Source: Basidiobolus meristosporus CBS 931.73 (lineage: Eukaryota > Fungi > Basidiobolomycota). Taken from it: a DNA stretch of 50,738 nt. This document shows positions 8,752 to 47,348 of this stretch, one piece after another (the first letter of the stretch is position 1; the number at the start of each line of letters is the position of its first letter). The DNA is taken from positions 1 through 50,738 of the forward strand of contig MCFE01000638.1 in the NCBI GenBank assembly GCA_002104905.1, read 5' to 3'. The notes under the pieces are model-generated. The model worked only from the letters and a program-made list of their open reading frames with translations. It searched no databases and was not told the DNA's origin. The position numbers and the translations under genes are program-made.

Positions 8752-11700
8752 TCATACCCAATCACAAATAATGGATTGGCCAAGGGATTTACAGACAGTG
8801 CCGCTTGCGCAATGGTTTTGAATCAGACGTCCATTACTGCAAACAAAGAAGATTGGTGAGGCGCCAGAGTCAAGACAACTGTACTGCCCATTAGTGCAGC
8901 CTCCGCTATAAGTAGGTTTCGCCTGTTTTTCGTCATGCGTAACCGTAACTGTCTGGATATTGTGAAGTGTAACTGTCCGGATGTCTGTAACGGTAACTTG
9001 ACTGACGTCAGTCACTGAAACTACAACAGTAGCGGTAGCACATTGAGGAGCACATGTTAAACCGGTGGAAAGTGGAGGGAATTGGGATACTACTGCGGTG
9101 GCAGTTGGCTCTAGAACGATCGTGCTATCAACGACAGTATGTATACTACCATCATTCGCCGAAATAGTTGCGACATGGGCAACTGTCTCAGCGGTTACAG
9201 TGCGAGCTTTCCCCATGGATTTAGCAACTACAGATAGGGTAGGTTCAATAGTGACAGTACGGTCAACAACTGTGTGAATGTTGCCGTTGGATTCAGTCAC
9301 AGTGATGGTGCGATCACCGCTTTCATCAGAAATGGTAGGCTGAACAGTAACAGTGCGGTCAACAACAGTGTGAACATTGCCGTTGGACTCAGTCACAGTG
9401 ATGGTACGGGCATCACTTTCTACGGAAACGGTAGGCTGAACAGTGACAGTGCGGTCAACAACAGTGTGAACATTGCCGTTGGACTCAGTCACAGTGATGG
9501 TACGGGCATCACTTTCTACGGAAACGGTAGGCTGAACAGTGACAGTGCGGTCAACAACAGTGTGAACATTGCCGTTGGGTTCAGTCACAGTGATGGTACG
9601 GGCACCACTTTCAACAGAAACGGTAGGCTGAACAGTGACAGTGCGGTCAACAACAGTGTGAACATTGCCGTTGGACTCAGTCACGGTGATGGTACGGGCA
9701 CCACTTTCAACAGGAATGGTAGGCTGAACAGTAACAGTGCGGTCAACAACAGTGTGAACATTGCCGTTGGACTCAGTCACAGTGATGATACGGGCACCGC
9801 TTTCTACAGCAACGGTAGGCTGAACAGTAACAGTGCGGTCAACAACAGTGTGAACATTGCCGTTGGACTCAGTCACAGTAATGGTGCGAGCACCACTTTC
9901 AACAGAAATGGTGGGCTGAACAGTAACAGTGCGGTCAACAACAGTGTGAACATTGCCGTTGGACTCAGTCCCGGTGATGGTACGGTCACCGCTTTCAACA
10001 GAAACGGTAGGCTGAACAGTGACAGTGCGGTCAACAACAGTGTGAACATTGCCGTTGGACCCAGTCACAGTAATGGTGCGAGCACCACTTTCAACTGAAA
10101 CGGTAGGCTGGACAATAACAGTGCGGTCAACAACAGTGTGAACATTACCGTTGGATTCAGTCACAGTAATGGTGCGAGCACCGCTTTCCACAGAAACGGT
10201 AGGCTGAACAGTAACAGTGCGGTCAACAACAGTGTGAACATTGCCGTTGGACTCAGTCACAGTGATGGTGCGAGCACCACTTTCAACAGAAACGGTAGGC
10301 TGAACAGTGACAGTGCGGTCAACAACAGTGTGAACATTGCCGTTGGACTCAGTCACAGTGATGGTACGGGCACCACTTTCAACAGAAACGGTAGGCTGAA
10401 CAGTGACAGTGCGGTCAACAACAGTGTGAACATTGCCGTTGGACTCAGTCACGGTGATGGTACGGGCACCACTTTCAATAGAAATGGTAGGCTGAACAGT
10501 AACAGTGCGGTCAACAACAGTGTGAACATTGCCGTTGGACTCAGTCACAGTGATGGTACGGGCACCACTTTCAACAGAAACGGTAGGCTGAACAGTGACA
10601 GTGCGGTCAACAACAGTGTGAACATTGCCGTTGGACTCAGTCACGGTGATGGTACGAGCACCGCTTTCAACAGAAACGGTAGGCTGAACAGTGACAGTGC
10701 GGTCAACAACAGTGTGAACATTGCCGTTGGATTCAGTCACGGTGATGGTACGAGCACCACTTTCAATAGAAACGGTAGGCTGAACAGTAACAGTACGGTC
10801 AACAACAGTGTGAACATTGCCGTTGGACTCAGTCACAGTGATGGTACGGGCGCCACTTTCAACAGAAACGGTAGGCGCAACAGTAACAGTGCGGTCAACA
10901 ACAGTGTGGATATTGCCGTTGGACTCAGTCACAGTGATAGTACGGGCACCGCTTTCAACAGAAACGGTAGGCTCAACAGTAACAGTGCGGTCAACAACAG
11001 TGTGAACATTGCCGTTGGACTCAGTCACAGTGATGGTACGGGCACCACTTTCAACAGAAACGGTAGGCTGAACAGTGACAGTGCGGTCAACAACAGTGTG
11101 AACATTGCCGTTGGACTCAGTCACGGTGATGGTACGAGCACCGCTTTCAACAGAAACGGTAGGCTGAACAGTGACAGTGCGGTCAACAACAGTGTGAACA
11201 TTGCCGTTGGATTCAGTCACGGTGATGGTACGAGCACCACTTTCAATAGAAACGGTAGGCTGAACAGTAACAGTACGGTCAACAACAGTGTGAACATTGC
11301 CGTTGGACTCAGTCACAGTGATGGTACGGGCGCCACTTTCAACAGAAACGGTAGGCGCAACAGTAACAGTGCGGTCAACAACAGTGTGGATATTGCCGTT
11401 GGACTCAGTCACAGTGATAGTACGGGCACCGCTTTCAACAGAAACGGTAGGCTCAACAGTAACAGTGCGGTCAACAACAGTGTGAACATTGCCGTTGGAC
11501 TCAGTCACAGTGATGGTACGGGCACCACTTTCAACAGAAACGGTAGGCTGAATAGTAACAGTGCGGTTAACAACAGTGTGAACATTGCCGTTGGACTCAG
11601 TCACGGTGATGGTACGGGCACCACTTTCAATAGAAACGGTAGGCTGAATAGTGACAGTGCGGTCAACAACAGTGTGAACATTGCTGTTGGACTCAGTCAC

Positions 11701-14700
11701 GGTGATGGTACGAGCACCACTTTCAACAGAAACGGTAGGCTGAACAGTGACAGTGCGGTCAACAACAGTGTGAACATTGCCGTTGGACTCAGTCACAGTG
11801 ATAGTACGGGCACCGCTTTCAACAGAAACGGTAGGCTGAACAGTGACAGTGCGGTCAACAACAGTGTGAACATTGCCGTTGGACTCAGTCACAGTGATAG
11901 TACGGGCACCGCTTTCAACAGAAACGGTAGGCTGAATAGTAACTGTGCGGTCAACAACAGTGTGAACATTGCTGCCGGATTCTGTGATAGTCACTGTTGG
12001 TTTTGTGGCTGTTACATCGACTGATGTCTCGGGGCGGATCGTAATATAAGCTGACGGCTTTTCGGTCACTGTATGCTTGTCGGTTACCGTTTGCTTAGTG
12101 GTCGTTACTATAGGTTCAGTTATAGTGATAGCAATCGATTCATCGTGTTGAACAGTCACCTCTTCGGAATTACTCTTGGTAACAGAGTGCTTATAGGTTA
12201 CGGTAGGCTCGGTAATTGTTACCGGTGGCTCAGTGATTGTTTCATCAAATGTAGACTTGTGCTGAATGGTCACCTTGCTCGATGGCATATCTGTTACAGA
12301 ATTTCTGTATGTTACTGTTGGCTTAGTGATGGTTACGGTTGGTTCGTTAGCAGTAATATTGACAGTGGTGTCATGTTGAACCGTGACTTGTTTTGAAGTC
12401 CCTTTCGTGACTGAGTGTGTATAGGTCACCTTAGGTTCTGTTACAGTTACAGTTGGTTCGGCAACTGTCACTTCGGCTGAAGTCAATCGTTCGATTGTCA
12501 CTTTTCTGGAAGGTGTCTCGGTCACGGAATGCTTGTTTGTAACAGTTGGCTCAGTGATTGTCATTGTTGGTTCAGTTATAGTAACATCTACTGATTTATC
12601 GTGTTGGATTGTCACCTCCTTTGATTCCGCTTTCGTAATCGAATGCTTATATGTCACGGTGGGTTCGGTTACTGTGACAGTGGGTTCGGTTACTGTCACC
12701 TCGACTGAGGTATCAGGCTGATTTGTTACCTCAATGGATGGCTTTTCAGTCACGGTATTCTTGTTTGTTACAGTTGGCTCAGTGATTGTCATTGTTGGTT
12801 CAGTTATAGTAACATCTACTGATTTATCGTGTTGGATTGTCACCTCCTTTGATTCCGCTTTCGTAACCGAATGCTTATATGTCACGGTGGGTTCGGTTAC
12901 TGTGACAGTGGGTTCGGTTATTGTTACCTCGACTGAGGTATCAGGCTGTATTGTTACCTCAATGGATGGCTTCTCAGTAACGGAATGCTTATGTGTTATA
13001 GTTGCCTCAGTAATAGTCATTGTTGGTTCAGTTATAGTAACATCTACTGATTTATCGTGATGGATGGTAACCTCCTCTGATTCCGCTTTCGTAATCGAAT
13101 GCTTATATGTCACGGTGGGTTCGGTTACTGTGACAGTAGGTTCGGTGACTGTTACCTCGACAGAGGTATCAGGCTGAATTGTTACCTCAATGGATGGCTT
13201 CTCAGTAACGGAATGCTTGTATGTTATAGTTGGCTCCGTAATGGTCACCACTGGTTCAGTAACAGTAATGCCAAATGAGGAATCATATCGAATTGTAACT
13301 TGCTTAGACGCCTCCTTGGTTACAGAGTGCTCATAGGTCACTGTAGGCTCCGTCACAGTGATTGTTGGCTCAGTGATGGTAACCTCACTCGAAAAAACCG
13401 GTGTTTGGGTCACATTGTGATGGGGCTTAATCGTTACAGAGTAATCCTTGGTGAATGTACGCTCAGTAACGGTTAGTGTTGGCTCTTTCTTAGTAACCTC
13501 GTCAGAGACAATAGGTTGAACAGTCACGCTATGTCCCTCCTGTGTAAACGTATGAGTTATAAATGTTGCAGATCCTGTAGAGGTCACTTGCGGTTCAGTA
13601 ACGGTGACATCAACAGAGATAGTAGGACGAACTGTTACTGCATCGAAAGAGGACTCTGGTGACTGAGACGATTTTTCAGACACGGAATGAACTGACTTCG
13701 AAGTAGACTTGCTGTGGTCATCATGCTTCGAGTGCGCACTTGGCTTCTTAGAATGTGACGATTCCATTGGTCTGTGCTCTGACTCCGAGTGAGTGGGCTT
13801 AACCGATGAGTCCATGTTGCTCTCACTGTGAACGTGCTCCGTTGGCTTATCAGATTCGGTGTGAACTGGCTTGGAAGACTTGCTGTGGTCATCAGTCTTC
13901 GAGTGTACACTAGGTTTCTCAGAGTGGGATGATTGCTTGGGTCTGTGCTCTGACTCCGAGTGGGTAGACTTAGCCGATGAGTCCATGTGGCTTTCACTGT
14001 GAGCGTGCTCGGTTGGCTTCTCAGAATGGGTTGACTTATCAGACTCGGTGTGAACTGGCTTCAAAGTAGACTTGCTATGGTCATCAGACTTCGAATGTTC
14101 ACTAGGTTTCTCTGAGTGTGGTGATTCCTTGGATCTGTGCTCTGTCTCCGAGTGAGTAGGCTTAACCGATGAGTCCATATTGCTTTCACTGTGAACGTGC
14201 TCTGTTGGCTTCTCAGCATGGGTTGACTTCACAGACTCGGTGTGAACTGGCTTGGAAGACATGCTGTGGTCATCAGGCTTCGAGTGTTCACTAGGTTTCT
14301 CAGAGTGTGATGATTCCTTGGGTCTGTGCTCTGACTCCGAGTGAGTAGGCTTTACCGATGAGTCCATGTGACTCTCACTGTGAGCGTGCTCGGTTGGCTT
14401 CTCAGAATGGGTTGACTTATCAGACTCGGTGTGTACTGGCTTCGAAGTAGACTTGCTATGGTCATCAGACTTCGAGTGTACACTAGGTTTCTCAGAGTGG
14501 GATGATTCCTTAGGTCTGTGCTCTGACTCCGAGTGGGTAGGCTTAACCAATGAGTCCATGTGGCTCTCACTGTGAACGTGCTCGGTTGGCTTCACAGAAT
14601 GAATTGACTTCTCAGACTCAGTATGAACTGGCTTGGAAGACTTGCTGTGGTTCTCAGACTTCGAGTGTTCACTAGGTTTCTCCGAGTGTGGTGATTCCTT

Positions 14701-17700
14701 GGGTCTGTGCTCTGACTCCGAGTGGGTAGGCTTAGCCGATGAGTCCATGTGGCTTTCACTGTGAGCGTGCTCGGTTGGCTTCTCAGAATGGGTTGACTTA
14801 TCAGAATCGGTGTGAACTGGCTTCAAAGTAGACTTGCTGTGGTCATCTGACTTCGAGTGTACATTAGGTTTCTCAGAGTGTGATGATTCCTTAGATCTGT
14901 GTTCTGACTCCGAGTGGGTAGGCTTAACCGATGAGTCTATATGGCTCTCACTGGGAGCGTGCTCGGTTGGCTTCTCAGTATGGGTTGACTTATCAGACTC
15001 GGTGTGAACTGGCTTGGAAGACTTGCTGTGGTCATCAGACTTCGAGTGTTCACTAGGCTTCTCAGAGTGGGATGATTCCTCAGGTCTGTGCTCTGACTCC
15101 GAGTGGGTAGGCTTAACCGATGAGTCCATGTGGCTTTCACTGTGACCGTGCTCGGTTGGCTTCTCAGAATGAATTGATTTCTCAGACTCGGTGCGGACTG
15201 GCTTGGAAGACTTGCTGTGGTCATCAGACTTCGAGTGCTCACTAGGTTTCTCAGAGTGTGATGATTCCTTGGGTCTGTGCTCTGACTCCGAGTGGGTAGG
15301 CTTAGCCGATGAGACCATGTGGCTCTCACTGTGAACGTGCTCGGTTGACTTCTCAGAATGGGTTGACTTTACAGAATCGGTGTGAACTGGCTTCAAAGTA
15401 GACTTGCCATGGTCATCTGACTTCGGGTGTACACTAGGTTTCTTGGACAGGGATGATTCCTTAGGTCTGTGCTCTGACTCCGAGTGAGTTGGCTTAACCG
15501 ATGAGTCCATGTGACTCTCACTGTGAACGTGATCGGTTGGCTTCTCAGCATGGGTTGACTTATCAGACTCGGTGTGAACTGGCTTGGAAGACTTGCTGTG
15601 GTCATCGGACTTCGAATGTTCACTAGGTTTTTCAGAGTGTGATGATTCCTTGGGTCTGTGCTCTGTCTCCGAGTGAGTAGGCTTTACCGATGAATCCATG
15701 TGGCTCTCACTGTGAACGTGCTCGGTTGGCTTCTCAGCATGGGTTGACTTATCAGACTCGGTGTGAACTGGCTTCGAAGTAGACTTGCTATGGTCATCCG
15801 ACTTCGAGTGTTCACTAGGTTTCACAGAATGGGTTGACTTCTCAGACACGATGTTAACTGGCTTCGAAGTAAACTTGCTATGGTCATCAGACTTCGAATG
15901 TTCACTAGGTTTCTCAGAGTGTGATGATTCCTTGGGTCTGTGCTCTGACTCCGAGTGGGTAGGCTTAGCCGATGAGTCCATGTGGCTCTCACTGTGAACG
16001 TGCTCGGTTGGCTTCTCAGAATGGGATGACTTTACAGAATCGGTGTGAACTGGCTTCAAAGTAGACTTGCTATGATCATCAGACTTCGAGTGCTCACTAG
16101 GTTTCTCAGAGTGTGATGATTCCTTGGGTCTGTGCTCTGACTCCGAGTGGGTAGGCTTAGCCGATGAGACCATGTGGCTCTCACTGTGAACGTGCTCGGT
16201 TGACTTCTCAGAATGGGATGACTTTACAGAATCGGTGTGAACTGGCTTCAAGGTAGACTTGCTATGGTCATCAGACTTCGAGTGCACACTAGGTTTCTCA
16301 GAGTGGGAAGATTTCTTAGGTCTGTGCTCTGACTCCGAGTGGGTAGGCTTATCCGATGAGTCCATGTGGCTCTCGCTGTGAACGTGCTCGGTTGGCTTCA
16401 CAGAATGAATTGACTTCTCAGACTCGGTATGAACTGGCTTGGAAGACTGGCTGTGGTCCTCAGACTTCGAGTGTTCACTAGGTTTTTCAGAATGAATTGA
16501 CTTCTCAGACTCGGTGTGATCTGGCTTGGAAGACTTGCTGTGGTCCTCAGACTTCGAGTGCTCACTAGGTTTCTCAGAGTGGGACGATTCCTTGGTTCTG
16601 TGCTCTGACTCCGAGTGAGTGGGCTTTACGGATGAATCCATGTGACTCTCACTGTGAACGTGCTCGGTTGGCTTCTCAGAATGGATTGACTTATCCGACT
16701 CGTTGTGAACTGGCTTGGAAGTAGACTTGCTATGGTCATCAGACTTCGAGTGTTCACTAGGCTTCTCAGAGTGGGATGATTCCTTAGGTCTGTGCTCTGA
16801 CTCCGAGTGGGTAGGCTTATCCGATGAGTCCATGTGGCTTTCACTGTGAGCGTGCTCGGTTGGCTTCTCAGGATGGGTTGACTTCTCAGACTCGGTGCGA
16901 ACTGGCTTGGAAGACTTGCTGTGGTCCTCAGACTTCGAGTGCTCACTAGGTTTCTCAGAGTGGGACGATTCCTTGGGTCTGTGCTCTGACTCCGAGTGAG
17001 TGGGCTTTACGGATGAATCCATGTGACTCTCACTGTGAACGTGCTCGGTTGGCTTCTCAGAATGGATTGACTTATCCGATTCGTTGTGAACTGGCTTGGA
17101 AGACTTGCTATGGTCATCAGACTTCGAGTGTTCACTAGGCTTCTCAGAGTGGGATGATTCCTTAGGTCTGTGCTCTGACTCCGAGTGGGTAGGCTTAGCC
17201 GATGAGTCCATGTGGCTCTCACTGTGAACGTGCTCGGTTGACTTCTCAGAATGGGATGACTTTACAGAATCGGTGTGAACTGGCTTCAAAGTAGACTTGC
17301 TATGGTCATCAAACTTCGAGTGTTCACTGGGTTTCTCAGAGTGTGATGATTCCTTGGGTCTGTGCTCTGACTCCGAGTGAGTAGGCTTTACCGATGAATC
17401 CATGTGGCTCTCACTGTGAACGTGCTCGGTTGGCTTCTCAGCATGGGTTGACTTATCAGACTCGGTGTGAACTGGCTTCGAAGTAGACTTGCTATGGTCA
17501 TCCGACTTCGAGTGTTCACTAGGTTTCACAGAATGGGATGACTTTACAGAATCGGTGTGAACTGGCTTCGAAGTAAACTTGCTATGGTCATCAGACTTCG
17601 AATGTTCACTGGGTTTCTCAGAGTGTGATGATTCCTTGGGTCTGTGCTCTGACTCCGAGTGGGTAGGCTTAGCCGATGAGTCCATGTGGCTCTCACTGTG

Positions 17701-22491: not shown

Positions 22492-22531
22492 ATTTCGGGA
22501 GTGCTTCTCAGAACTCATGTTACTGTCCAGT

Positions 22532-22539
22532 TATTTATA
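22532..22539 (-). promoter_or_regulatory. TATA box (TATAAATA) of gene A
   Basis: 41 bp from the MKV start; the same motif lies 40 bp from the MKV start in gene B. Confidence 0.65.
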
Positions 22540-27245: not shown

Positions 27246-27840
27246 TCATATTCTATCACTGATCTTGGATTGGCCAAGGGATTTGCACACCGTGCTACTG
27301 GTGCAATGGTTCTGGATCAGCTGACCATTACTACCAACGAGGAAGATTTGCACTACCCGCAGCAGGTAGATTTTGCCGGTTTCTCGTTCCGCATGTCAGT
27401 GATTGCATGAATGTTGCGCATGGTGACTCTTTGGATGTTGATCTCGGTAACTTGATTAGCCCCAGTTACCAAGATGGCCACAGTGATGGCAGTGAATTGA
27501 GGTGCACAAGTTGCATCAATGGGGAAGAGGAACAGTGCCAGTAGCAGTTGATTTGACAATTACTGCGATATATGATAGTGCGTACATTACCATCATCCTT
27601 GGATACAATCGTAATATGGGAAACAGTCACGGCAGCAACAGTGTGAGTATCGACAGAAATGCTGTGATCAACAATGGTGCCTAATTTAGTAGCCGCCATA
27701 GAGTGAATACCGCCATTCATAGAAACAGTAGGTACATTAGCATGGCCGTTATCATTTGAGTCGATTAGAGTGACCGTACGAGCCTCACTTGAAGCAGTAA
27801 TAGGGTAGCCAACGACTGTGGTATGCGTCACTCAGTAGCT
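27246..27840 (-). pseudogene. Psi-3: decayed 3' portion of the giant mucin family
   Basis: EARTVTLIDSNDNG...VSHITIVSKDDGNVRTII, frameshift, ATCAPQFTAITV...MRNIH...AKSTCCG, an internal deletion in the CBM, then SNGQLIQNHCTSSTVCKSLGQS...DRI*. Confidence 0.85.
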
Positions 27841-36100: not shown

Positions 36101-39100
36101 AATGGTAACTTCAATGGATGTATCATGCTGAATGGTAACCTCCCTGGAAGCACTCTTAGTCACGTAGTGCCTATGGGTTACTGCGGGTTCAGTCACAGTG
36201 ACGGTTGGCTCGGTGATTGTTATATCTACTGAAGTCTCGCGTTGGATGGTCGCCTCGCCGGATGGCTTGTCAGTCACGGAATGCTTGTAGGTTACCGTTG
36301 GTTCGGTGACGGTCTCAGTTGGTTCATTTATGGTAACTTCAATGGATGTATCATGTTGAATTGTGACTTCTTCGGAAGCATCCTTAGTTATGTAGTGCCT
36401 ATGGGTTACTGTGGGTTCAGTCACAGTGACGGTTGGCTCGGTGATTGTTACATCTACTGAAGTCTCACGTTGAATGGTCACCTCGCCGGATGGTTGGTCA
36501 GTCACCGAATGCTTGTAAGTTACCGTTGGATCCGTAACGGTCACTGGCGGTTCAGTTATGGTAACTTCAACGGATTCATCATGCTGAATTGTGACTTCTG
36601 CTGAAGCCTCCTTTGTAACAAAGTGTTTTGAGGTCACCGTGGATTCAGTCACAGTCAGAGTAGGCTTGGTAATAGTAATATCGCTGAAAACAACTGGTCT
36701 TTGGGTCACATTGTGATGAGGCTTGATTGTTACGGAGTAATCTTTGGTAGAGGTACGTTCAGTCACGGTTATAGTTGGCTCTGTGATAGTAACATCACTA
36801 GACACAACAGGATGAACGGTGACCTTTCGTGCCTTTTCGGTATATGTATGAATTATAGTTTTGGAAGGCTCTGTTATAGTAACTTTGGGCTGGGTAATGG
36901 TGACATCAACAGAAATAGTAGGCCGGATTGTTGCTTCGTCGGAAGTAGAAATCTTCACTTGAGAAGAATCCATTGTCCTATTTTTCGAACTAGAACGAGT
37001 AGTAGAGTGCGGCGATACCTGGGATCTGTGCTCTGACTCCGAGTGAGTAGATATTTGCGATGAGTCAGTGCGGCTCTCACTGGAAACGTGCTCCGTTAGT
37101 CTCTCAGAATGGGATGATTTGTCGGAATCGGCGTGAACTGGCTTCGAAGTAGCCTTGTTGTGGTTATCAGACATGGAGTGTTCGCTAGACTCCTCAGAGC
37201 GAGTGGGCTTTACCGACGAGTCAATGCTGCTCTCACTGTGAACGTGCTCGGTAGGCTTCTCAGAATGGAATGATTTATCGGACTCGGTGTGAGCTGGCTT
37301 CGAAGTAGACTTGGTGTGGTCATCCGAATTCGGGTGTCCACTGTGCTTCAAAGAGTGAGACGAGCTTTTAGGTTTATGCCCTGACTCCGAATGAGCAGGC
37401 TTGGCCGATGATTCAGTGTGGCTCTCACTGTGAACGTGCTGGGTTGGCCTCTCCGAATGTGACAATTTGCCGGACTCAGTGTGAATTGGCTTCGAAGTAG
37501 GCTTGATGTGGTCTTCTGAATTCGAGTGTTCACTAGGCTTCTCAGAGTGTGACGACTCTTCATGTCTGTGCTCTGACTCTGGGTAAATGGACTTTACCGA
37601 CGATTCAGTGTGGCTCTCACTGGAAACGTGCTCAGTTGGCCTCTCATAATGGGAGGATGTGTCGGAATCGGTGTGGACCGACCTCGAAGTAGTCTTGTTT
37701 TGGTTATAAGACATGGAGTGTTCGCTAGACTTCTCAGAGCGTATTAATTCCTTGGATCTGTGCTCTGACTTCAAGTGAGTAGGCCTTACCGATGAGTCAG
37801 TGAGGCTCTCACTGCGAACACGCTCTGTTGGTTTGTCAGATTCGGTCGATTTGTTGGTCTCGGTGTGGACTGGCTTTGAAGCAGACTTGCTGTGTTCATC
37901 AGACCTGGAGTGTTCGCTAGGCTTCTCGAAGTGTGACGGCTCTTTGGATCTGTGTTCTGACTCCGAATGAGCAGGCTTGACAGATGAGTCAGTGTGGCTC
38001 CCACTGTGAACGTGCTCAGTTGGCCTTTCAGAATGGGACATTTTTCCGGACTCAGTGTGAATTGGCTTCGAAGTAGACTTGCCGCGATCTTCTGAATTCG
38101 AGTGTTCACTAGGCTTCTCAGAGTGTGGCGATTCCTTGGGTCTGTGCTGTGACTCCGAGTGTGCAGGCTTTGTCGATGAGACAGTGCGGCTCTCACTGTG
38201 AGCGTGCTCTGTTGGCTTCTCAGAACCAGTTAATTTATCGGACTCAATGTGAACTGGCTTCGAGGTAGGCTTGCTATGGTCATCAGACTTCAAATGTTCA
38301 TTAGAACTCTCAGAGTGAGACGAGTCTTGAGGTCTGTGCCCTGACTCCGAGTGAGCAGGCTTGGCTGATGATTCAGTGTGGCTCTCACTGTGAACGTGCT
38401 GGGTTGGCCTTTCAGAATGGGACATTTTGCCGGACTCAGTGTGAATTGGCTTTGAAGTAGGCTTGATGTGGTCTTCTGAATTCGAGTGTTCACTAGGCTT
38501 CTCAGAGTGTGACGACTCTTCATGTCTGTGCTCTGACTCTGGGTAAATAGACTTTACCAATGATTCAGTGTGGCTCACACCGGGAACGTGCTCAGTTGGC
38601 CTCTCATAATGGGAGGATGTGTCGGAATCGGTGTGGACCGACCTCGAAGTAGCCTTGTTATGGTTATCAGACATGGAGTGTTCGCTAGACTCCTCAGAGT
38701 GTGTTGATTCCTTAGACTGGGGCTCCGACTCAGAGTGAGTGGGCTTTACCGACGAGTCAATGCTGCTCTCACTGTGAACGTGCTCGGTAGGCTTCTCAGA
38801 ATGGAATGATTTATCGGACTCGGTGTGTGCTGGCTTCGAAGTAGACTTGGTGTGGTCATCCGAATTCGGGTGTCCACTGTGCTTCAAAGAGTGAGACGAG
38901 CTTTTAGGTTTATGCCCTGACTCCGAATGAGCAGGCTTGGCCGATGATACAGTGTGGCTCTCACTGTGAACGTGCTGGGTTGGCCTCTCCGAATGTGACA
39001 ATTTGCCGGACTCAGTGTGAATTGGCTTCGAAGTAGGCTTGATGTGGTCTTCTGAATTCGAGTGTTCACTAGGCTTCTCAGAGTGTGACGACTCTTCATG

Positions 39101-42100
39101 TCTGTGCTCTGACTCTGGGTAAATGGACTTTACCGACGATTCAGTGTGGCTCTCACTGGAAACGTGCTCAGTTGGCCTCTCATAATGGGAGGATGTGTCG
39201 GACTCGGTGTGGACTGACTTCGAAGTAGCCTTGTTGTGGTTATCAGACATGGAGTGTTCGCTAGACTTCTCAGAGCGTATTGACTCCTTGGATCTGTGCT
39301 CTGACTCCGAGTGAGTAGGCTTTACCGATGAGCCAGTGCGGCTCTCACTGCGAACACGCTCTGTTGGTTTGCCAGATTGGGTCGATTTGTTGGTCTCAGT
39401 GTGGACTGGCTTTGAAGTGGACTTGCTATGGTCATCAGACTTGGAGTGTCCGCTTGGCTTCTCAGAGTGCAACGGCTCTTTGGATCTGTGCCCTGAATCC
39501 GAGTGAGCAGGCTTGGCCGATGAGTCCATGTGGCTCTCACTGTGAACGTGCTCGGTTGACTTCTCAGCATGGGTTGACCTATCAGACTCGGTGTGAACTG
39601 GCTTAGGCTGGGGCTCTGACTCAGAGTGGGTGGGCTTTACCGACGAGTCAATGCCGCTCTCACTGTGAACGTGCTTGTTAGGCTTCTCAGAATGGAATGA
39701 TTTATAGGACACGGTGTGGGTTAGCTTTGAAATAGCAGTAGAGTGCGACGATCCCTGGGATCTGTGCTCCGACTCCGAGTGAGTAGGCATTGCCGATGAG
39801 TCCATGTGGCTCTCACTGTGAACGTGCTCGGTTGACTTCTCAGAATGGGTTGACGTATCAGACTCGGTGTGAACTGGCTTGGTAGTAGACTTGCTGTGGT
39901 AATCAGACTTCAAGTGTTCACTGGACCTCTCAGAGTGAGGCGAGTCTTGAGGTCTGTGCCCTGACTCCGAGTGAACAGGCTTGGCTGATGTCTTAGTGTG
40001 GCTCTCACTGTGAACGTGCTCGGTTGGCCTTTCAGAATGGGTCATTTTGCCGGACTCAGTGTGAATTGGCTTCGAAGTAGATTTGCCGCGATCTTCTGAA
40101 TTTGAGTGTTCACTGGGCTTCTGAGAGTGTGATGATTCCTTGGGTGTGTGCTTTGACTCCGAGTGCGCAGGCTTTGCCGATGAAACAGTACGGCTCTCAC
40201 TATGAACGTGCTCTGTTGGCTTCTCAGAACTAGTTGATTTATCGGACTCGATGTGAACTGGCTTCGAAGTAGTCTTAGTGTGGTCATCAGTCTTCAAGTG
40301 TTCACTGGACCTCTCAGAGTGAGACGACTCTTGAGGTCTGCGCCCTGACTCCGAGTGAGCAGGCTTGGGCGATGAATCAGTGTGGCTCTCACTGTGAGCG
40401 TGCTCTGTAGGCTTCTCAGAATGAGTTGATTTATCGGACTCGGTGTGGACTGGCTTCGAAGTAGACTTGCTATGGTCATCAGACTTGGAGTGTCCGCTTG
40501 GCTTCTCAGAGTGCAACGGCTCTTTGGATCTGTGCCCTGAATCCGAGTGAGCAGGCTTGGCCGATGAGTCAGTGTGGCTCTCACTGGAAACGTGCTCAGT
40601 TGGCCTCTCATAAGGGGACAATGTGTCGGGCTCAGTGTGTGGTGACTTCGAAGTAGCCTTGTTATGGCCATCAGGCTTGGAGTGTTCGCTAGGCTTCTCA
40701 GAGTGGGATGACACCTTAGGCTGGGGCTCTGACTCAGAGCGAGTGGGCTTTACCGATGAGTCAATGCTGCTCTCACTGTGAACGTGCTTGGTAGGCTTCT
40801 CAGAATGGAATGATTTATCGGACTCGGTGTGAGCTGGCTTCGAAATAGATTTACTGTGGTCGACTGACTCCGAGTGGTTACTGGGCTTTACAGAGTGTAC
40901 CGATTCCTTGGGTTTGCGCTCTGATTTCGAGTGAGCAGGCTTGACCGATGATTCAGCATGGCTCTCACTGTGAACGTGCTCGGTTGGTCTCTCATAACGG
41001 GACGATGTGTCGGACTCGGTGTGGAGTGATTTCGAAGTAGCCTTGCTGCGGTTATAAGACTTCAAGTGTTCACTGGGCTTCTCAGAGTATGATGATTCCG
41101 TAGGCTTATGCTCTGACTCCGAGTGAGCAGGCTTGGCCGACGAATCAATGTGGCTCTCACTTCGAACGTGCTCGGTTGGCCTCTCAGAATGAGGCGATCT
41201 GTCGGACTCGATGTGAACTGCCTTCGAGGTAGGCTTGCTGCGGTTATTAGATTTCAAGTGTTCACTGGGCTTCACAGAGTGTGGCGATTCTTTGGGTCTG
41301 TGCTCTGACTCCGAGTGTGCAGGCTTTGCCGATGAATCAGTGTGGCTCTCACTGTGAACGTGCTTGGTTGGCCTCTCAGAATGGGTCGATGTGTCGGACT
41401 CAGTGTGAACTGGCTTCGAAGTAGACTTGCTGTGGTCATCAGACTTCGAGTGTTCACTAGGTTTCTCAGAGTGTGATGATTCCTTAGGTTTGTGCTCTGA
41501 CTCAGAGTGATTGGGCTTTACCGACGAGTCAGTGCTGCTCTCACTGTGAACGTGCTTGGTAGGCTTCAAAGAGTGTGGCGATTCCTTGGGTCTGTGCTCT
41601 GACTCCGAGTGTGCAGGCTTTGCCGATGAATCAGCATGGCTCTCACTGTGAACGTGCTTGGTTGGCCTCTCAGAATGGGTCGATGTGTCGGACTCAGTGT
41701 GAACTGGCTTCGAAGTAGACTTGCTGTGGTCATCAGACTTCGAGTGCTCACTAGGTTTCTCAGAGTGTGACGATTCCTTAGGCTGGGACTCTGACTCAGA
41801 GTGATTGGGCTTTACCGACGAGTCAGCGTTGCTCTCACTGTGAACGTGCTTGGTAGGCTTCAAAGAGTGTGGCGATTCCTTGGGTCTGTGCTCTGACTCC
41901 GAGTGATTAGACTTTACCGATGAATGAGTGCTGCTCTCACTGCGAACGTGCTCTGTTGGTTTCACAGAATGAGCTGATTTGTCGGACTCGGTGTGGACTG
42001 GCTCCGAAGTAGACTTGCTATGGTCATCAGTCTTGGGGTGTTCGCTAGGCTTCTCAGAGTGTGTTGACACCTTAGGCTTGGGCCCTGACTCTGAGTGGGT

Positions 42101-45100
42101 GGGCTTTACCGACGAGTCAATGCTGCTCTCACTGTGAACGTGCTTGGTAGGCTTCTCAGAATGGAATGATTCATCGGACTCGGTGTGGGTTAGCTTTGAA
42201 GTAGACCTGCTGTGGTTATCGGACTTAGGGTGTTCACTAGGTTTTTTCGAGTGAGTAGGCTTTACCGGTGAGTAAATGCGGCTCTCACTGTGAGTGTTTT
42301 CTGTAGGCTTTTTTAAATGCGAAGAATTGGTGTACTCAGTGTGGACAGTCTTCGAAGTTATTTTATCGTGATCAGCAGATTTTGAGTGCTCCGATGAGTG
42401 AGGTACGGTGATGGAATTGCGCTCCGAGCCTTTCATTGAGGCGGTAACTGCAGGTGCGTCAGCATGCCTAACCATTGATGAAGCGAGGGGGACCTCACTG
42501 CGAGGGTGCTCAGAGGGCTCGGAGTGAGACACCTTAGATTTGTGTGCTGACTTTGCGGGTGTAGGTTTTGTAGAGAAGTTAAGGTGGCTCTCACTATCAG
42601 GATGCTTGGTTGACGCCCCAGATGCAGACGTCTCCATAGATTTGCTCGCTTGACTTTCAATGTGCGAATGCACTTTAGGCTTCCCAGATGGTGATTTTCG
42701 GTGATCAGCAGAATTGAAGGACTCGCTGGGCTTGTGCCCTGACTCTGAGTGAGTAGACTTCATAGATGGGCTAGCGTGGCTTTGACTGTGAGTCCTTTCG
42801 GAGGGCTTCTGAGAATGCGATGGTTTCTCAGACCCAGTGTTAACCGGCTTCAGAGGTAGCTTGTTGTGATCAGCGGAGTTGCTGTGTTTACTGGGCTTCT
42901 CAGATTGCAACGATTCTTTAGGTCTGTGCTCTGACGCCGAGTGTGTAGACTTTTCCGATGAATCAGTGTGGCTCTCAATGTGAACGTGCGCGGTTGGCTT
43001 CTTGGAATGGGTTGATTTATCAGACTCGGTGTGAACTGGCTTCGAAGTAGACTTGCTTTGGTCATCCGACTTCGAGTGTTCACTAGGTTTCTCAGAGTGT
43101 GATGATTCCTTGGGTCTATGCTCTGACTCCGAGTGAGTGGGCTTAACCGATGAGTCCATGTGGCTCTCACTGTGAATGTGCTCGGTTGGCTTCTCAGCAT
43201 GGGTTGACCTATCAGACTCGGTGTGAACTGGCTTCGAGGTAGACTTGCTATGATCATCAGACTTCGAGTGTTCACTAGGTTTCTCAGAGTGGGATGACTC
43301 CTTGGGTCGGTGCTCTGATTCCGAGTGGGTAGGCTTTACCGATGAGTCGATGTGGCTTTCACTGTGAACGTGCTCGGTTGGCTTCTCAGCATGGGTTGAC
43401 AGATCAGACTCGGTGTGAACTGGCTTCGAAGTAGACTTGCTATGATCATCAGACTTCGAGTGTTCACTAGGTTTCTCAGAGTGGGATGACTCCTTGGGTC
43501 GGTGCTCTGACTCTAAGTGAGTAGGCTTTACCGATGAGTCGATGTGGCTTTCACTGTGAACGTGATCGGCAGGCTTCTCAGAATGGGTAGACTTATCAGA
43601 CTCGGTGTGCACTCGCTTCGTAGTATACTTGCTATGGTCATCAGATTTCGAGTGCTCACGCGGCTTCTCACCGTGTGATGATTCCTTGGGTTTGTGCTTT
43701 GGCTCAGAGTGAGTAGGCTCTACAAATGAGGCCATGGTGCTTTCACTGTGTACTGGATGTTTTTCACTAGCTGATTCCTCTGATTGGCTCTTCGTGGTTG
43801 GAGAGTATGATGGATTAAGTTCGGTTTTGGGAATGTGCTGAATGGTACTCTTGCCAGTCGCTGCTGGTGGTGTTGCCGCCTTCGAATCCGACATGATTGA
43901 ATTCCCGCTAGGTGGTGCTCCTGCGCAGGCCGGGCCGTTGGAAATCATTAGGCAGACTTGGTTACCACCACAACTGTATTTTTTGATCACTCCATTGATA
44001 CAGGCATTAACAACTCCAGTTCTACGCTCGCTTTCGCAAGTGGATTTTTGACACTCGGGCTTCACAGGGACATATGACATCGACTTGCTCTCCGGAGTGA
44101 AAGATTTGCTTGGTATGGACATAGCTGCTTCTGATTTATCGCTACTGCTGATGTGCGAAGGAGTAACTGTGCCTAAGTGATCGCTGCTTCCTTTGAGAAT
44201 GGAAACACCTGTATCAGATTCGTCGCTATTTCTGGTGTTTGTGGTCGTAGCTGTGCCAGATTTATCACTATTTGTGCTATGAGTGGAAGTATCTGTGTCG
44301 GCTTTATCACTTCTTACTGAGGTAGACGAGTGAGTGATAGATGAATCGAGTGTTGGATGTGGGGTCTGGTTACCAGCGATTTGCAAAATACACTCAATTC
44401 CCTCCCACTGGCCACTCCAACTTACCCAATCTACACATATCGATGTATCCTGGCAGTTGAACGGGACCATTTCTCCATTGATGCATTTCTTGAATTGTCG
44501 TCCCTGCCCTGGCAGGACACATTCGTATTCAGCTGGGCAGTTGCTTTTCTTTGAGATGGTCACTACAGCTGTTGATTCGGCCACCATACGAGTAACCACC
44601 TTGGTTTGGAGCACGACACTTTGCACGATATCTATGGATGGTGTAGCTGGTTCCGTGGTATCTGGGGTTGATGTACTTGGTGTCACGGAAGGCACGTTTA
44701 CGTTAGAATTTTCGATTTGATTCTGAACACAGGCTTTACCCTCCTTACATGACGATCCCGAGGGGCAAAGCATGATTCTCCATTCCCCTTCTAAGCACCA
44801 TGCGGCTGCGTCTAAACTGGAACAAGCCCACTGAAATGGAGTGTCACAAGCGCCACTCAGCGGTTTATACTTTTTTTCGGTGCCAGGAACTATACACCCT
44901 AATTTGTCCTCACATATCTGATTTCCACTACAGGCCTTGATTTGCGCCGTACCAAAACTCGTGCAGTGCTGCATTGTTTTTTTGTCGAGACAAGACCAAG
45001 GGACGCTTGGGTCACATTGAATTGGAGTGTAGGTTACGGGTATTTGTTGGCAACTTGGCTTACTGTTTATCATTTGGCACTCGTACCCGCTTGGGCAGGC

Positions 45101-45610
45101 TGCTTCGGCAACATTTCCCTTGTAGCAAGTTAGATACCGATCTTTGCTTAAGCATTTGCCGTTGTAAGTGGACGGGCTGCACCCCATTGTTTCGACCGCC
45201 TGAGAGGTTTCCGCCGATCGGTGGACAGAAAGGGAGGTAGCAGCAATCATGCCGGTTTTCAGCGCAGAAGCTTTCATTGGCAACTCGCACTGGGCCTCAC
45301 CGGTACCAGAGGAAACGCAAACAAACTGTTGTTTGATTGGTTTGTACTGGGTCGGGCAGTCGAACACCACCCAATAGCCGTTGATACATTTTTTGTACCG
45401 GTGATGATTGTCAGGCATGCAATTGACCTGGCCGTCGTTACAACGCTGTGCTAATGTTGTAACTGCAGCTCCATGAGATAGCGTCGAAGTCAGCCCATGA
45501 ATAGTATTGATTGAGCCTGCTTGAAACGTTTCTGTTTTCGGCGGCAAGTCAGACGCCCATACAGGCGCTAACAGAGCGAAGGAAACTGTCGACACAGCCT
45601 TGACCTTCAT
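30164..45610 (-). CDS. Gene B: giant secreted mucin/adhesin-like protein (about 5,148 aa), paralog of gene A
   Basis: Uninterrupted 15.5-kb ORF with signal peptide MKVKAVSTVSFALLAPVWA, six Cys modules, His/Ser repeats (about 43760-37010), 38-aa repeats (about 36660-35310), about 44 32-aa repeats (about 35290-30950) and C-terminal CTNGQYSCLESGASPIFFVCSNGRLIQNHCASGTVCKSLGQSIICDWL. The ORF's first ATG (45649) abuts the TATA box, so it is unlikely to be the start. Confidence 0.9.
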   Translation of the reverse strand: MKVKAVSTVSFALLAPVWASDLPPKTETFQAGSINTIHGLTSTLSHGAAVTTLAQRCNDGQVNCMPDNHHRYKKCINGYWVVFDCPTQYKPIKQQFVCVSSGTGEAQCELPMKASALKTGMIAATSLSVHRSAETSQAVETMGCSPSTYNGKCLSKDRYLTCYKGNVAEAACPSGYECQMINSKPSCQQIPVTYTPIQCDPSVPWSCLDKKTMQHCTSFGTAQIKACSGNQICEDKLGCIVPGTEKKYKPLSGACDTPFQWACSSLDAAAWCLEGEWRIMLCPSGSSCKEGKACVQNQIENSNVNVPSVTPSTSTPDTTEPATPSIDIVQSVVLQTKVVTRMVAESTAVVTISKKSNCPAEYECVLPGQGRQFKKCINGEMVPFNCQDTSICVDWVSWSGQWEGIECILQIAGNQTPHPTLDSSITHSSTSVRSDKADTDTSTHSTNSDKSGTATTTNTRNSDESDTGVSILKGSSDHLGTVTPSHISSSDKSEAAMSIPSKSFTPESKSMSYVPVKPECQKSTCESERRTGVVNACINGVIKKYSCGGNQVCLMISNGPACAGAPPSGNSIMSDSKAATPPAATGKSTIQHIPKTELNPSYSPTTKSQSEESASEKHPVHSESTMASFVEPTHSEPKHKPKESSHGEKPREHSKSDDHSKYTTKRVHTESDKSTHSEKPADHVHSESHIDSSVKPTHLESEHRPKESSHSEKPSEHSKSDDHSKSTSKPVHTESDLSTHAEKPTEHVHSESHIDSSVKPTHSESEHRPKESSHSEKPSEHSKSDDHSKSTSKPVHTESDRSTHAEKPTEHIHSESHMDSSVKPTHSESEHRPKESSHSEKPSEHSKSDDQSKSTSKPVHTESDKSTHSKKPTAHVHIESHTDSSEKSTHSASEHRPKESLQSEKPSKHSNSADHNKLPLKPVNTGSEKPSHSQKPSERTHSQSHASPSMKSTHSESGHKPSESFNSADHRKSPSGKPKVHSHIESQASKSMETSASGASTKHPDSESHLNFSTKPTPAKSAHKSKVSHSEPSEHPRSEVPLASSMVRHADAPAVTASMKGSERNSITVPHSSEHSKSADHDKITSKTVHTEYTNSSHLKKPTENTHSESRIYSPVKPTHSKKPSEHPKSDNHSRSTSKLTHTESDESFHSEKPTKHVHSESSIDSSVKPTHSESGPKPKVSTHSEKPSEHPKTDDHSKSTSEPVHTESDKSAHSVKPTEHVRSESSTHSSVKSNHSESEHRPKESPHSLKPTKHVHSESNADSSVKPNHSESESQPKESSHSEKPSEHSKSDDHSKSTSKPVHTESDTSTHSERPTKHVHSESHADSSAKPAHSESEHRPKESPHSLKPTKHVHSESSTDSSVKPNHSESEHKPKESSHSEKPSEHSKSDDHSKSTSKPVHTESDTSTHSERPTKHVHSESHTDSSAKPAHSESEHRPKESPHSVKPSEHLKSNNRSKPTSKAVHIESDRSPHSERPTEHVRSESHIDSSAKPAHSESEHKPTESSYSEKPSEHLKSYNRSKATSKSLHTESDTSSRYERPTEHVHSESHAESSVKPAHSKSERKPKESVHSVKPSNHSESVDHSKSISKPAHTESDKSFHSEKPTKHVHSESSIDSSVKPTRSESEPQPKVSSHSEKPSEHSKPDGHNKATSKSPHTEPDTLSPYERPTEHVSSESHTDSSAKPAHSDSGHRSKEPLHSEKPSGHSKSDDHSKSTSKPVHTESDKSTHSEKPTEHAHSESHTDSSPKPAHSESGRRPQESSHSERSSEHLKTDDHTKTTSKPVHIESDKSTSSEKPTEHVHSESRTVSSAKPAHSESKHTPKESSHSQKPSEHSNSEDRGKSTSKPIHTESGKMTHSERPTEHVHSESHTKTSAKPVHSESGHRPQDSPHSERSSEHLKSDYHSKSTTKPVHTESDTSTHSEKSTEHVHSESHMDSSAMPTHSESEHRSQGSSHSTAISKLTHTVSYKSFHSEKPNKHVHSESGIDSSVKPTHSESEPQPKPVHTESDRSTHAEKSTEHVHSESHMDSSAKPAHSDSGHRSKEPLHSEKPSGHSKSDDHSKSTSKPVHTETNKSTQSGKPTERVRSESRTGSSVKPTHSESEHRSKESIRSEKSSEHSMSDNHNKATSKSVHTESDTSSHYERPTEHVSSESHTESSVKSIYPESEHRHEESSHSEKPSEHSNSEDHIKPTSKPIHTESGKLSHSERPTQHVHSESHTVSSAKPAHSESGHKPKSSSHSLKHSGHPNSDDHTKSTSKPAHTESDKSFHSEKPTEHVHSESSIDSSVKPTHSESEPQSKESTHSEESSEHSMSDNHNKATSRSVHTDSDTSSHYERPTEHVPGVSHTESLVKSIYPESEHRHEESSHSEKPSEHSNSEDHIKPTSKPIHTESGKMSHSERPTQHVHSESHTESSAKPAHSESGHRPQDSSHSESSNEHLKSDDHSKPTSKPVHIESDKLTGSEKPTEHAHSESRTVSSTKPAHSESQHRPKESPHSEKPSEHSNSEDRGKSTSKPIHTESGKMSHSERPTEHVHSGSHTDSSVKPAHSESEHRSKEPSHFEKPSEHSRSDEHSKSASKPVHTETNKSTESDKPTERVRSESLTDSSVRPTHLKSEHRSKELIRSEKSSEHSMSYNQNKTTSRSVHTDSDTSSHYERPTEHVSSESHTESSVKSIYPESEHRHEESSHSEKPSEHSNSEDHIKPTSKPIHTESGKLSHSERPTQHVHSESHTESSAKPAHSESGHKPKSSSHSLKHSGHPNSDDHTKSTSKPAHTESDKSFHSEKPTEHVHSESSIDSSVKPTRSEESSEHSMSDNHNKATSKPVHADSDKSSHSERLTEHVSSESRTDSSQISTHSESEHRSQVSPHSTTRSSSKNRTMDSSQVKISTSDEATIRPTISVDVTITQPKVTITEPSKTIIHTYTEKARKVTVHPVVSSDVTITEPTITVTERTSTKDYSVTIKPHHNVTQRPVVFSDITITKPTLTVTESTVTSKHFVTKEASAEVTIQHDESVEVTITEPPVTVTDPTVTYKHSVTDQPSGEVTIQRETSVDVTITEPTVTVTEPTVTHRHYITKDASEEVTIQHDTSIEVTINEPTETVTEPTVTYKHSVTDKPSGEATIQRETSVDITITEPTVTVTEPAVTHRHYVTKSASREVTIQHDTSIEVTINEPTETVTEPTVTFKHSVTDKPSGEVTIQRETSVDVTITEPTVTVTEPTVTHRHYITKDASEEVTIQHDTSIEVTITEPTITVTEPTITHKHSVTDQPSGEVTIQRETSVDVTFTKPTVTVTEPTVTHRHYITKDASEEVTIKHDTSIEVTINEPTETVTEPTVTYKHSVTDKPSGEVTIQHETSVDITITEPTVTVTEPTVTHRQYITKDASEVVTIQHDTSIEVTINEPTKTVTEPTVTYKHSVTDQPSGKVTIQPETSIDLTYTERGSRSITVTESNGNVHTVVDRTVTIQPTVSIESGARSITVTESNSIVHTVIDRTVTVQPTVSIKSGARTITVTESDGNVHTVVDRTVTVQPTISVESGARTITVTESNGNVHTIVDRTVTVQPTISVESGARTITVTESNGNVHTVVDRTVTVQPTISVESGARTITVTESNGNVHTVVDRTVTIQPTVSIDSGARTITVTESDGNVHTVVDRTVTVQPTVSVESGARTITVTESNGNVHTVVDRTVTLRPTVSVESGARTVTVTESNGNVHTVVDRTVTIQPTVSIESGARSITVTESNSIVHTVIDRTVTDQPTVSIKSGARTITVTESNGNVHTVVDRTVTVQPTVSVESGARTVTVTESNGNVHTVVDRTVTVQPTVSVESGARTVTVTESNGNVHTIIDRTVTVQPTVSVESGARTTVTEPNGNVHTVVGRTVTIHPTVSIESGARTITATESDGNVHTVVDRTVTVQPTVSVESGARTITVTESNGNVHTVVDRTVTVEPTISVESGARTITVTESNGNVKTVVDRTVTVQPTVSVESGARTITVTESNGNVHTVVDRTVTVQPTVSVESGARTVTVTESNGNVHTVIDRTVTVQPTVSVESGARTVTVTESNGKVHTVVDRTVTVQHTVSVESGARTITVTESNGNVHTVVDRTVTVQPTVSVESGARTITVTESNGNVHTVIDRTVTVQPTVSVESGDRTITVTESNGNVHTVVDRTVTVQPTVSVESGARTVTVTESNGNVHTVVDRTVTVQPTISVESGARTITVSESNGNVHTVVDRTVTIQPTVSIERGALTITVTESDGNVHTVIDRTVTVQPTISVESDARTITVTESNGNVHTVVDRTVTVQPTVSVESGARTITVTESNGNVHTVVDRTVTIQPTVSVESGVHTITVPESEGNVNTAVDRTVTVQPTVSIERGARTVTVTESNGNVHTVVDRTVTVHPTVSVESGARTVTVTESNGNVHTIVDRTVTIQPTVSIDSGARTITVTESNGNVHTVTDRTVTVQPTVSVESDAHTITVTKSDGNVHTVVNHTVTVQSTVSVEGGARTITVTESNGNVHTVVDRTVTVQPTVSVESGARTITVTESNGNVHTVVDRTVTVRPSVSVESGARTLTVTESNGNVHSVVDRTAIVQPTISVVSDVRTITVTESDGNVHTVVDRTVTVQPTVSVESGAHTITVTGSNGNINTIVDRTVTVQPTVSIESGTRTIALTESNDNAHTVVDRTVTLQPTVSVESGAHTITVTESEGNVHSVVERTVTVPPTVSVESGVHTITVTESNGNVHTIDDRTVTVQPTASIESGARTITVTESNGNIHTVVDHTVTVQPIVSVESGARTITVTESNGNVHTVIDRTVIVQPTVSIDSGDRTTTATETDDRVHNIVDRTVTIQSTVSVGSDVRSITATQSDDKDITVTIQPTVSVDSGARTIAVNESQGKVSTVADHTVTVQSSLSAVSNTRIITVTSAVGNMHTSIDRSVTVEPAETATSASAVTVTEFPGQSYSIVERSVTISPTALMESGVRSNVAEPTVTVIETNSNASSVSDRTVAAETQAPAETVAHVTTVTEGNGSVRTIIDRTIIVKPTITATVTQFSPSIEGTCAPQCATATVFVSVTDVSQATVTSIHTVTLHNIHTVTVTRDEKQAKSTYSGDCTNGQYSCLESGASPIFFVCSNGRLIQNHCASGTVCKSLGQSIICDWL
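30950..35290 (-). repeat. 96-bp (32-aa) coding tandem repeat in gene B, about 44 units
   Basis: Same consensus as in gene A; increasingly degenerate toward the C-terminal end. Confidence 0.95.
35310..36660 (-). repeat. 114-bp (38-aa) Thr/Val repeats with 228-bp dimer period in gene B
   Basis: Shadow ORFs recur 228 bp apart (36014 and 36242); units of type VTITEPTVTVTEPTVTHRHYITKDASEEVTIQHDTSIE. Confidence 0.9.
37010..43760 (-). repeat. His/Ser-rich about 192-bp repeat array of gene B, more diverged than in A
   Basis: Same HSES/HSEKP motifs, a degenerate stretch at about 42250-42950 and an internal 1536-bp-offset duplication. Confidence 0.9.
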
Positions 45611-47340: not shown

Positions 47341-47348
47341 CAAGCCCC

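Follow-up and report, generated by a model that had tools for sequence, protein, structure and literature searches.

Two giant single-frame genes of Basidiobolus meristosporus encoding candidate chitin-tethered extracellular proteins

Hardly any adhesins or wall-matrix proteins are known from outside the Dikarya (PMC6023273). The minus strand of a 50,738 nt contig of Basidiobolus meristosporus CBS 931.73 (GCA_002104905.1, MCFE01000638.1; analysed over its whole length and termed the window) carries two giant uninterrupted open reading frames (ORFs), A and B, which have no internal stop codon and extend for 13.8 kb and 15.5 kb, respectively. These raise the question of whether such frames are genuine genes and, if so, what proteins of around half a megadalton might do for a fungus. 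The answer set out here is that A and B are genuine genes that arose by tandem duplication and are under selection; as to their products, we give a modest preference to a general mechanism in which each, having no anchor of its own, is held in the extracellular matrix by a tether to chitin, as a fungal counterpart of the peritrophin mucins of insects.

Two paralogous giants and their block order

Each gene is a single ORF, and the two share one order of blocks: a signal peptide, six modules with six Cys residues each, His-rich 64-aa repeats, arrays of 76-aa and then 32-aa Thr/Val-rich repeats, a CAPQC pair (CxxxC) and, at the very C-terminus, a seventh six-Cys module.

8752..22518, minus strand: gene A, single ORF, 4588 aa, 499.6 kDa
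22435..22518, minus strand: A, N-terminal signal-like peptide, aa 1-28, read directly from the sequence
20734..22332, minus strand: A, block of aa 63-595 holding six CBM19-like modules of 6 Cys, joined by conserved linkers
13669..20601, minus strand: A, His/Ser/Glu/Lys-rich 64-aa (192-bp) repeats, ~2,300 aa
11973..13550, minus strand: A, Thr/Val-rich 76-aa (2 x 38) repeats
9230..11972, minus strand: A, 32-aa (96-bp) Thr/Val array, 28.6 copies
8908..9229, minus strand: A, stretch ahead of the last module, made up of degenerate repeats, the CAPQC pair and a Thr/Val linker that is conserved
8755..8907, minus strand: A, C-terminal CBM19-like module, aa 4538-4588, ending CDWV
30164..45649, minus strand: gene B, single ORF, 5161 aa, 557.9 kDa
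43919..45451, minus strand: B, six 6-Cys modules
37010..43792, minus strand: B, His-rich 64-aa repeats, more diverged than those of A
35306..36613, minus strand: B, 76-aa Thr/Val repeats, 5.7 copies
31143..35289, minus strand: B, 32-aa Thr/Val repeats, 43.2 copies
30167..30319, minus strand: B, C-terminal CBM19-like module, ending CDWL

The original prediction, made from the sequence before any database search, had described two paralogous single-ORF giants, and the lengths of 4588 and 5161 aa with the same blocks in the same order bear this out. The coordinates and lengths given there were right apart from the choice of start Met: the first ATG of B is at 45649, and the position used at that stage, 45610, corresponds to B's second Met (MKVK...), immediately ahead of a hydrophobic signal-like stretch. 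Both proteins have a calculated isoelectric point of ~6.2 and an extreme composition, with Ser at 17-19%, Thr at 13-14%, Val at 10-11%, Glu at 9-10%, His at 8-9% and Cys at 1%.

The signal-like N-terminus is common to A and B (..AVLTVSFALLAPVWA|SD), with the hydrophobic stretch following the second Met; the true start of A is probably Met10, and cleavage is predicted after VWA by the -3/-1 rule (APVWA|SD). At the other end, A finishes in ..GQSIICDWV and B in ..CDWL, a hydrophobic tail being absent from both. Neither a transmembrane segment nor a glycosylphosphatidylinositol (GPI) signal was found in A or B, in which no 19-residue window reaches a Kyte-Doolittle value of 1.6; the earlier claim that both lack a GPI or transmembrane tail is thus upheld. 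As read from their predicted termini, A and B are shown to be exported and anchorless.

Between the modules lie the repeat arrays. The His-rich 64-aa unit comprises 15% His, 28% Ser, 13% Glu and 12% Lys, and the calculated charge of this region per 100 aa moves from ~-1 at pH 7 through +7 at pH 6 to +22 at pH 4, changing sign near pH 6.5-7. In the first Thr/Val-rich array, the best period according to Tandem Repeats Finder is 228 bp or 76 aa (88-92% matches); the 114-bp or 38-aa period reaches 63%. The array of 38-aa units that had been predicted is therefore present as a Thr/Val array, its unit being 76 aa composed of two 38-aa halves. The model of the 32-aa units places three strands in each, regularly arranged and entirely of beta type, at low confidence, with predicted local distance difference test (pLDDT) scores of 55-68; the Thr/Val repeat model at pLDDT 55 was too low for a fold search. 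The top feature-space match of the 32-aa array is an Als tandem-repeat cluster (score 0.78), which serves as a lead only. A and B are probably heavily O-glycosylated.

A Pfam scan of the repeats matched no curated family, and the His-rich region gave no match of any kind. Matches to the Thr/Val repeats at the level of the whole protein (tRNA_edit at 2e-25, CARM1, CSD_RNase_II, SPP1_Dit and a beta-helical trimerisation domain) were rejected as artefacts, as zero single stretches pass; such strong E-values arise because many weak partial repeat matches are summed. The interval 9019-13521 (minus strand) of the window is a case in which summed Pfam scores on tandem repeats mislead. A Kex2-processed repeat precursor of the Rep1 type was also considered and is unlikely, there being no KR/RR sites in A and four in B.

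The cysteine modules and their nearest kin

The N-terminal modules of A lie at aa 63-119, 150-198, 205-251, 262-307, 366-420 and 548-595, and across the modules the pattern C, C, C..G, C, C, C is invariant. When a profile of these modules was searched against 1.84 billion representatives, 146 proteins were recovered, 27 of them at E <= 1e-10. Scanning 86 of the 146 identified 22 with CBM_19 (best 3e-17) and 16 with CBM_14, as well as one GH18 chitinase, Massospora P0005, containing several such modules. The Pfam family PF03427 (CBM_19) belongs to the same clan as CBM14. Among outside proteins, those closest to the terminal module likewise have ..CDW at their C-termini, and over the same residues two of them pass the 20.1-bit cut-off of PF03427 (P0125, 26.3 bits; P0081, 21.8 bits) and a third nearly does so (P0045, 19.7 bits); some outside relatives of this module are fused to expansin-like DPBB domains. 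The profile of the six N-terminal modules aligned with 30 outside modules at an hhalign probability of 97.9% (E 4e-13), in a test that is not fully independent given that the comparison set was itself picked with the module profile; 12 of these 30 match CBM_19 as isolated 50-aa pieces.

The fold of the terminal module points in the same direction. An AlphaFold2 model built from a 112-row alignment has a pLDDT of 91.8 and consists of five short strands. Against AFDB clusters, it resembles CBM19-named proteins, with template modelling (TM) scores of 0.93-0.78, and the C-terminus of a GH16 protein; against AFDB Swiss-Prot, it resembles residues 359-408 of Rhizopus chitinase 1/2 (TM 0.77, 35-37% identity), residues 504-554 of yeast Cts1 (TM 0.66), acidic mammalian chitinase, obstructor-E and the C-termini of AA11 lytic polysaccharide monooxygenases. 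In the PDB, the model matches the CBM14 domain of human chitotriosidase CHIT1 (probability 0.97-0.98), Der p 23, tachycitin and Avr4, with VIA-align Z scores of 5.1 for CHIT1, 5.1 for Der p 23, 3.9 for Blo t 12 and 3.7 for Avr4. By profile, profile-profile and fold evidence, the modules, small disulfide-stabilised beta folds like those of chitinase chitin-binding domains, are supported as divergent members of the CBM14/CBM19 superfamily, nearest to CBM19.

When PDB sequences were searched with the module profiles, the sole match was to an eggshell protein and its CxxGxxCxxxxxxC hairpin, a generic motif, and was set aside.

Selection, transcription and relatives

A frame that stays open for more than 4,500 codons is not a chance occurrence, and every repeat class within it is under purifying selection. 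The ratio of the proportions of non-synonymous and synonymous differences (pN/pS) is 0.18-0.25 between 32-aa units, 0.22-0.26 between His-rich units and 0.30-0.41 between 76-aa units; over the last 100 codons, the comparison of A with B gives a pN/pS of 0.10 at a pS of 0.54.

Short-read DNA contigs (X1, X2) span the genes and the intergenic DNA, with approximately double depth where A and B are the same, and in those identical stretches the variants fitting copy B sit at about half depth, as expected of two true copies. None of the sequencing runs is listed as RNA; six are labelled 'DNA?', among them X3, whose library type was guessed. The contigs of X3 total 27 Mb and match A exactly at 20869-21110, 21536-21779 and 21916-22088; another, at 22079-22421, carries B-type variants, and the 1.7 kb upstream of A is uncovered. 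A further contig has a 76-nt joint at 24234/24311 with CT..AC ends, corresponding to GT..AG on the minus strand. X3 behaves as RNA because coding parts of the 5' region of A are covered, the intergenic DNA is not, and a GT..AG joint lies nearby. The 5' coding parts of A, and probably those of B, are thus transcribed, with no joints within the covered stretches; A and B are apparently intronless, as seen over the 5' parts that X3 covers.

The identity of A and B varies greatly along their length. Identity is 100% for modules 1 and 2, 98% for module 5 and 94% for module 6, and drops to 56-60% for modules 3 and 4; pS rises from 0.06 over the first 200 codons to 0.51 in modules 3-4, and the 3' end shows 0.54-0.60. 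This mosaic indicates what appears to be an old duplication followed by recent, patchy gene conversion at the 5' end. Modules 3-4 (21598-21906 in A and 44723-45025 in B, minus strand) have a pN/pS of 0.49; diversifying or positive selection on them was considered and rejected, as this value accompanies a pS of 0.51 against 0.06 in the flanks. The DNA between the two genes also holds the debris of a relative:

~27000..27831, minus strand: decayed remains of the 3' part of another family member, lying between B and A, with degenerate Thr/Val repeats, a TCAPQ segment and a terminal module that is frameshifted and has lost Cys residues

This relic suggests either that a third tandem copy once existed or that a gene was partly duplicated.

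The nearest database proteins belong to B. meristosporus CBS 931.73 and B. ranarum, and the family appears, judging from the matching sequences, to be confined to Basidiobolus, with paralogues in the former and fragments in the latter. In paralogue C (GCA_002104905.1, MCFE01000034.1; L003 10001-21598), one frame of ~3,865 codons runs through the blocks in the order seen in A and B and is interrupted once, by a TGA at codon 291 in module 4; the gene model in public databases covers a 454-aa fragment and contains invented introns. Paralogue D (P0016) shares the N-terminal block, continues into a His-rich tail and is cut by the end of its contig. In B. ranarum (GCA_040143965.1), the N-terminal fragments P0004 and P0014 show 33-37% identity and have His-rich tails, and P0045, P0071 and P0108 are C-terminal fragments; these lie on contigs of 2-7 kb, all giant copies of this species being cut by contig ends. 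One B. ranarum protein, P0118 (L005 3341-3961, JASJQH010006955.1), is complete at 206 aa; its signal peptide is followed by a Thr/Val stretch and, at the C-terminus, by a CBM19-like module of the CDW type, which makes it a small-scale version of the last part of the giants. Short complete proteins of this kind suggest that the Thr/Val part and the CDW module may form a cassette of their own.

No full-length giant of 2,523-8,029 aa with the N-terminus of A or B was found in 5.8 billion clusters, and protein A was not on record by exact look-up. A collection of bacterial and archaeal contigs gave no match, a blank that is uninformative for fungi. Public relatives are 'hypothetical' fragments, some of them automatically named 'Chitin-binding type-2 domain-containing'. 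The family is invisible in current annotations, its gene models being truncated or ended by contig ends; short-read assemblies and gene callers hide giant genes of this type.

That A and B are themselves an artefact of assembly, or decaying pseudogenes whose frames are accidentally open, is a highly improbable alternative. Long near-identical repeats do assemble poorly, paralogue C has an in-frame stop, which may be a pseudogenising change, an allele or a sequencing error, and a decayed relic lies between A and B; against this stand 4588 and 5161 stop-free codons, pN/pS values well below 1 in all repeat classes, a short-read depth that fits two copies and the presence of RNA coverage.

Around the two giants, the window contains the following features:

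793-1881, minus strand: C2H2 zinc-finger ORF
4565-5674, plus strand: adenylosuccinate synthetase
47208-50535: copia-type LTR (long terminal repeat) retrotransposon remnants beside gene B, gag on the plus strand and an integrase fragment on the minus strand

The P-loop exon of the adenylosuccinate synthetase gene (..GDEGKGK..) lies near 4340-4470, ~40-100 nt upstream of the main ORF and in a different frame, implying a short intron at ~4470-4508. The original prediction had placed introns in both neighbours of the pair, which is borne out on this side only, the other flank consisting of copia gag and integrase debris. The intergenic region between A and B also produces a small spliced transcript at ~24209-24468 (minus strand), with a 76-nt GT..AG skip at 24235-24310 and no long ORF.

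A possible chitin tether, its rivals and known systems

In the mechanism that we favour, A and B would after secretion hold chitin non-covalently and multivalently, most likely the chitin of the fungus's own wall. The six N-terminal modules would provide the stronger hold and the C-terminal module a second one, and binding at both ends could bridge fibrils or surfaces. Alternatively, the proteins may stand off the wall as a long, glycosylated, extended and hydrated layer, the sign of whose charge would change at ~pH 6.5-7. The core between the modules combines a disordered His-rich polyampholyte of ~2,300 aa with 1,500-2,200 aa of Thr/Val-rich beta repeats. The earlier proposal of a tether with modules at both ends survives in that modules are both N- and C-terminal, in an asymmetric 6 + 1 layout. 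Chitin binding, cross-linking, glycosylation, pH response and biological role are here inferred only, and the candidate roles are a capilliconidial adhesive, a shield against gut chitinases, a metal- or pH-responsive matrix and a wall scaffold.

Several observations weigh against a chitin tether. The aromatic residue of the family consensus CxxGxW, following the invariant Gly, is kept in modules 1 and 4 only (two of seven), so that some modules may not bind chitin. No module passes Pfam directly: CBM_19 (PF03427, gathering cut-off 20.1 bits) reaches 14.0 bits (E 0.05) at the C-terminus of A and 12.4 bits at the N-terminus of B, and CBM_14 (PF01607, cut-off 22.1 bits) reaches 14.0 bits at the C-terminus of A and 11.9 bits. 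The direct hidden Markov model check that had been suggested for these two families therefore came out negative, with a best score of 14.0 bits for each, and the CBM19-like assignment made in the original prediction stands on the profile search (22 of 86), the hhalign probability and the confident fold, not on Pfam itself. The structural Z scores are modest, at 5.1 or less, and an unrelated fusexin domain scores 5.4; a modest Z is expected for a domain of 50 residues and is not decisive alone. Finally, the RNA support is made up of low-depth contigs over ~1 kb of the 5' region only.

Both the sub-threshold Pfam scores and the lost aromatics would suit modules that keep the CBM14/19 fold and bind another glycan or a protein, in which case A and B would be generic mucin-like surface coats or adhesins; the fusion of related modules to DPBB/expansin-like and GH16 domains, which are not chitinases, is also consistent with this. 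We nevertheless consider it unlikely, as by far the most of the closest relatives, by structure and by sequence, are associated with chitinases or bind chitin. A different division of labour is conceivable, in which the function resides in the His-rich domain, whose several hundred His per molecule would capture Zn, Cu or Ni or act as a buffer, and the Cys modules are mere wall anchors. A content of 15% His is held under purifying selection over ~2,300 aa, and His-rich tails recur in the B. ranarum orthologues and paralogue D; the domain has neither the metal-binding motifs of a known family nor a Pfam match, and we rate such a metal- or pH-buffering matrix as decidedly improbable.

The remaining alternatives accept chitin binding and differ in the purpose that it serves. 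The capilliconidia of the Basidiobolaceae bear adhesive material on an apical beak (PMC13370150), and A and B might be the adhesive there or on another holdfast, fixed at one end to the spore wall and using their His-rich and beta-rich regions as a pH- or metal-curing glue to arthropod carriers. The apparent confinement of the family to Basidiobolus would fit such a role, as would the resemblance, and it is a resemblance only, of His-rich low-complexity repeats to coacervating marine adhesives and beak proteins, together with the Als-like lead from the 32-aa repeats. However, epicuticle covers the chitin of arthropod cuticle and leaves the modules no obvious grip on a carrier, and X3, which probably comes from a vegetative culture, nevertheless holds transcripts; we regard a spore glue as unlikely. 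Avr4, a CBM14 protein, protects Cladosporium against plant chitinases. By analogy, A and B could coat the fungus's own wall chitin against the chitinases of insect-eating amphibian and reptile guts, the His-rich spacer turning strongly cationic in acid. The modelled fold similarity to Avr4 and the computed change in charge between pH 7 and pH 4 are compatible with this, as is the presence of several giant paralogues in the genome of a gut-passing fungus. These arguments are purely circumstantial, and a half-megadalton spacer would be needless when Avr4 is ~10 kDa; we rate this shield as rather improbable. An ambitious synthesis would regard A and B as a half-megadalton, chitin-anchored family of Basidiobolus's own with a pH- and metal-switchable His-rich block, forming the material of the capilliconidial adhesive or of a protective gut-passage coat and resembling, by convergence, the His-rich systems of squid beak and mussel and the peritrophic mucins of insects; we think it unlikely.

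The preferred reading remains that of a chitin-tethered, anchorless matrix protein. No paper describing the architecture of A and B was found in the literature, in agreement with the earlier statement that it was not recognised as a described family. As far as we found, no description exists of the size of half a megadalton, the presence of a conserved His-rich block, the arrangement of modules as 6 + 1 or the confinement to Basidiobolus. Neither the module nor the idea of joining chitin-binding domains to a mucin-like spacer is new, proteins of the latter kind being well known in animals. A and B hence offer a concrete candidate family in the Zoopagomycota, consisting of anchorless giants that would attach by CBM19-type modules rather than by GPI or PIR links, and whose conserved His-rich block could be pH- or metal-responsive.

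Known systems share parts of this design. The CBM19 modules of GH18 chitinases, such as Cts1 and those of Rhizopus, resemble the modules of A and B in length (~45-55 aa), in their six Cys and the pattern C..G..W....C..G..C.......C, and in predicted fold (TM 0.66-0.77, 31-37% identity), and are often C-terminal; A and B differ in having no catalytic domain, sub-threshold PF03427 scores and seven copies split between the ends of a giant repetitive protein. The Als and Flo adhesins similarly contain long arrays of Thr/Val-rich, beta-prone tandem repeats, the Als repeats being 36 aa in length and those of A and B 32-38 aa. By contrast, Als, Flo and Epa proteins have a GPI signal and A and B are without a hydrophobic C-terminal tail; the N-termini of A and B gave no Pfam match to an Ig-like or PA14 ligand domain at E <= 10, and their repeats no match to the Candida_ALS repeat PF05792 at E <= 1. 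BAD1 (WI-1) of Blastomyces is secreted and then rebinds wall chitin through a C-terminal Cys-rich domain, and shares with A and B a signal peptide, the lack of a GPI signal, dozens of tandem repeats and the position of that domain (PMC6023273). Its EGF-like domain, 24-aa Cys/Trp repeats and size of ~120 kDa set it apart, and the likeness is functional only, with no kinship in sequence to be expected.

A further parallel is with the insect intestinal mucins, in which chitin-binding domains and a mucin spacer are thought to organise peritrophic chitin, the spacer being thought to set the spacing of the chitin fibrils (PMC3065741). The mechanism favoured here would resemble theirs, and also the return of BAD1 to the wall. 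A and B have the peritrophin-mucin architecture of a signal peptide, several domains of chitin-binding type, a Ser/Thr-rich spacer and no anchor, a correspondence in architecture only that does not imply descent. Peritrophins and intestinal mucins such as HaIIM86 and T. ni IIM are likewise secreted and anchorless, with several six-Cys domains flanking Thr-rich spacers and a distinct C-terminal domain; unlike A and B, they are animal proteins of under 1,000-2,000 aa with CBM14 proper and without a His-rich polyampholyte. The likeness of A and B to them is one of analogy, or a very distant homology of the module only.

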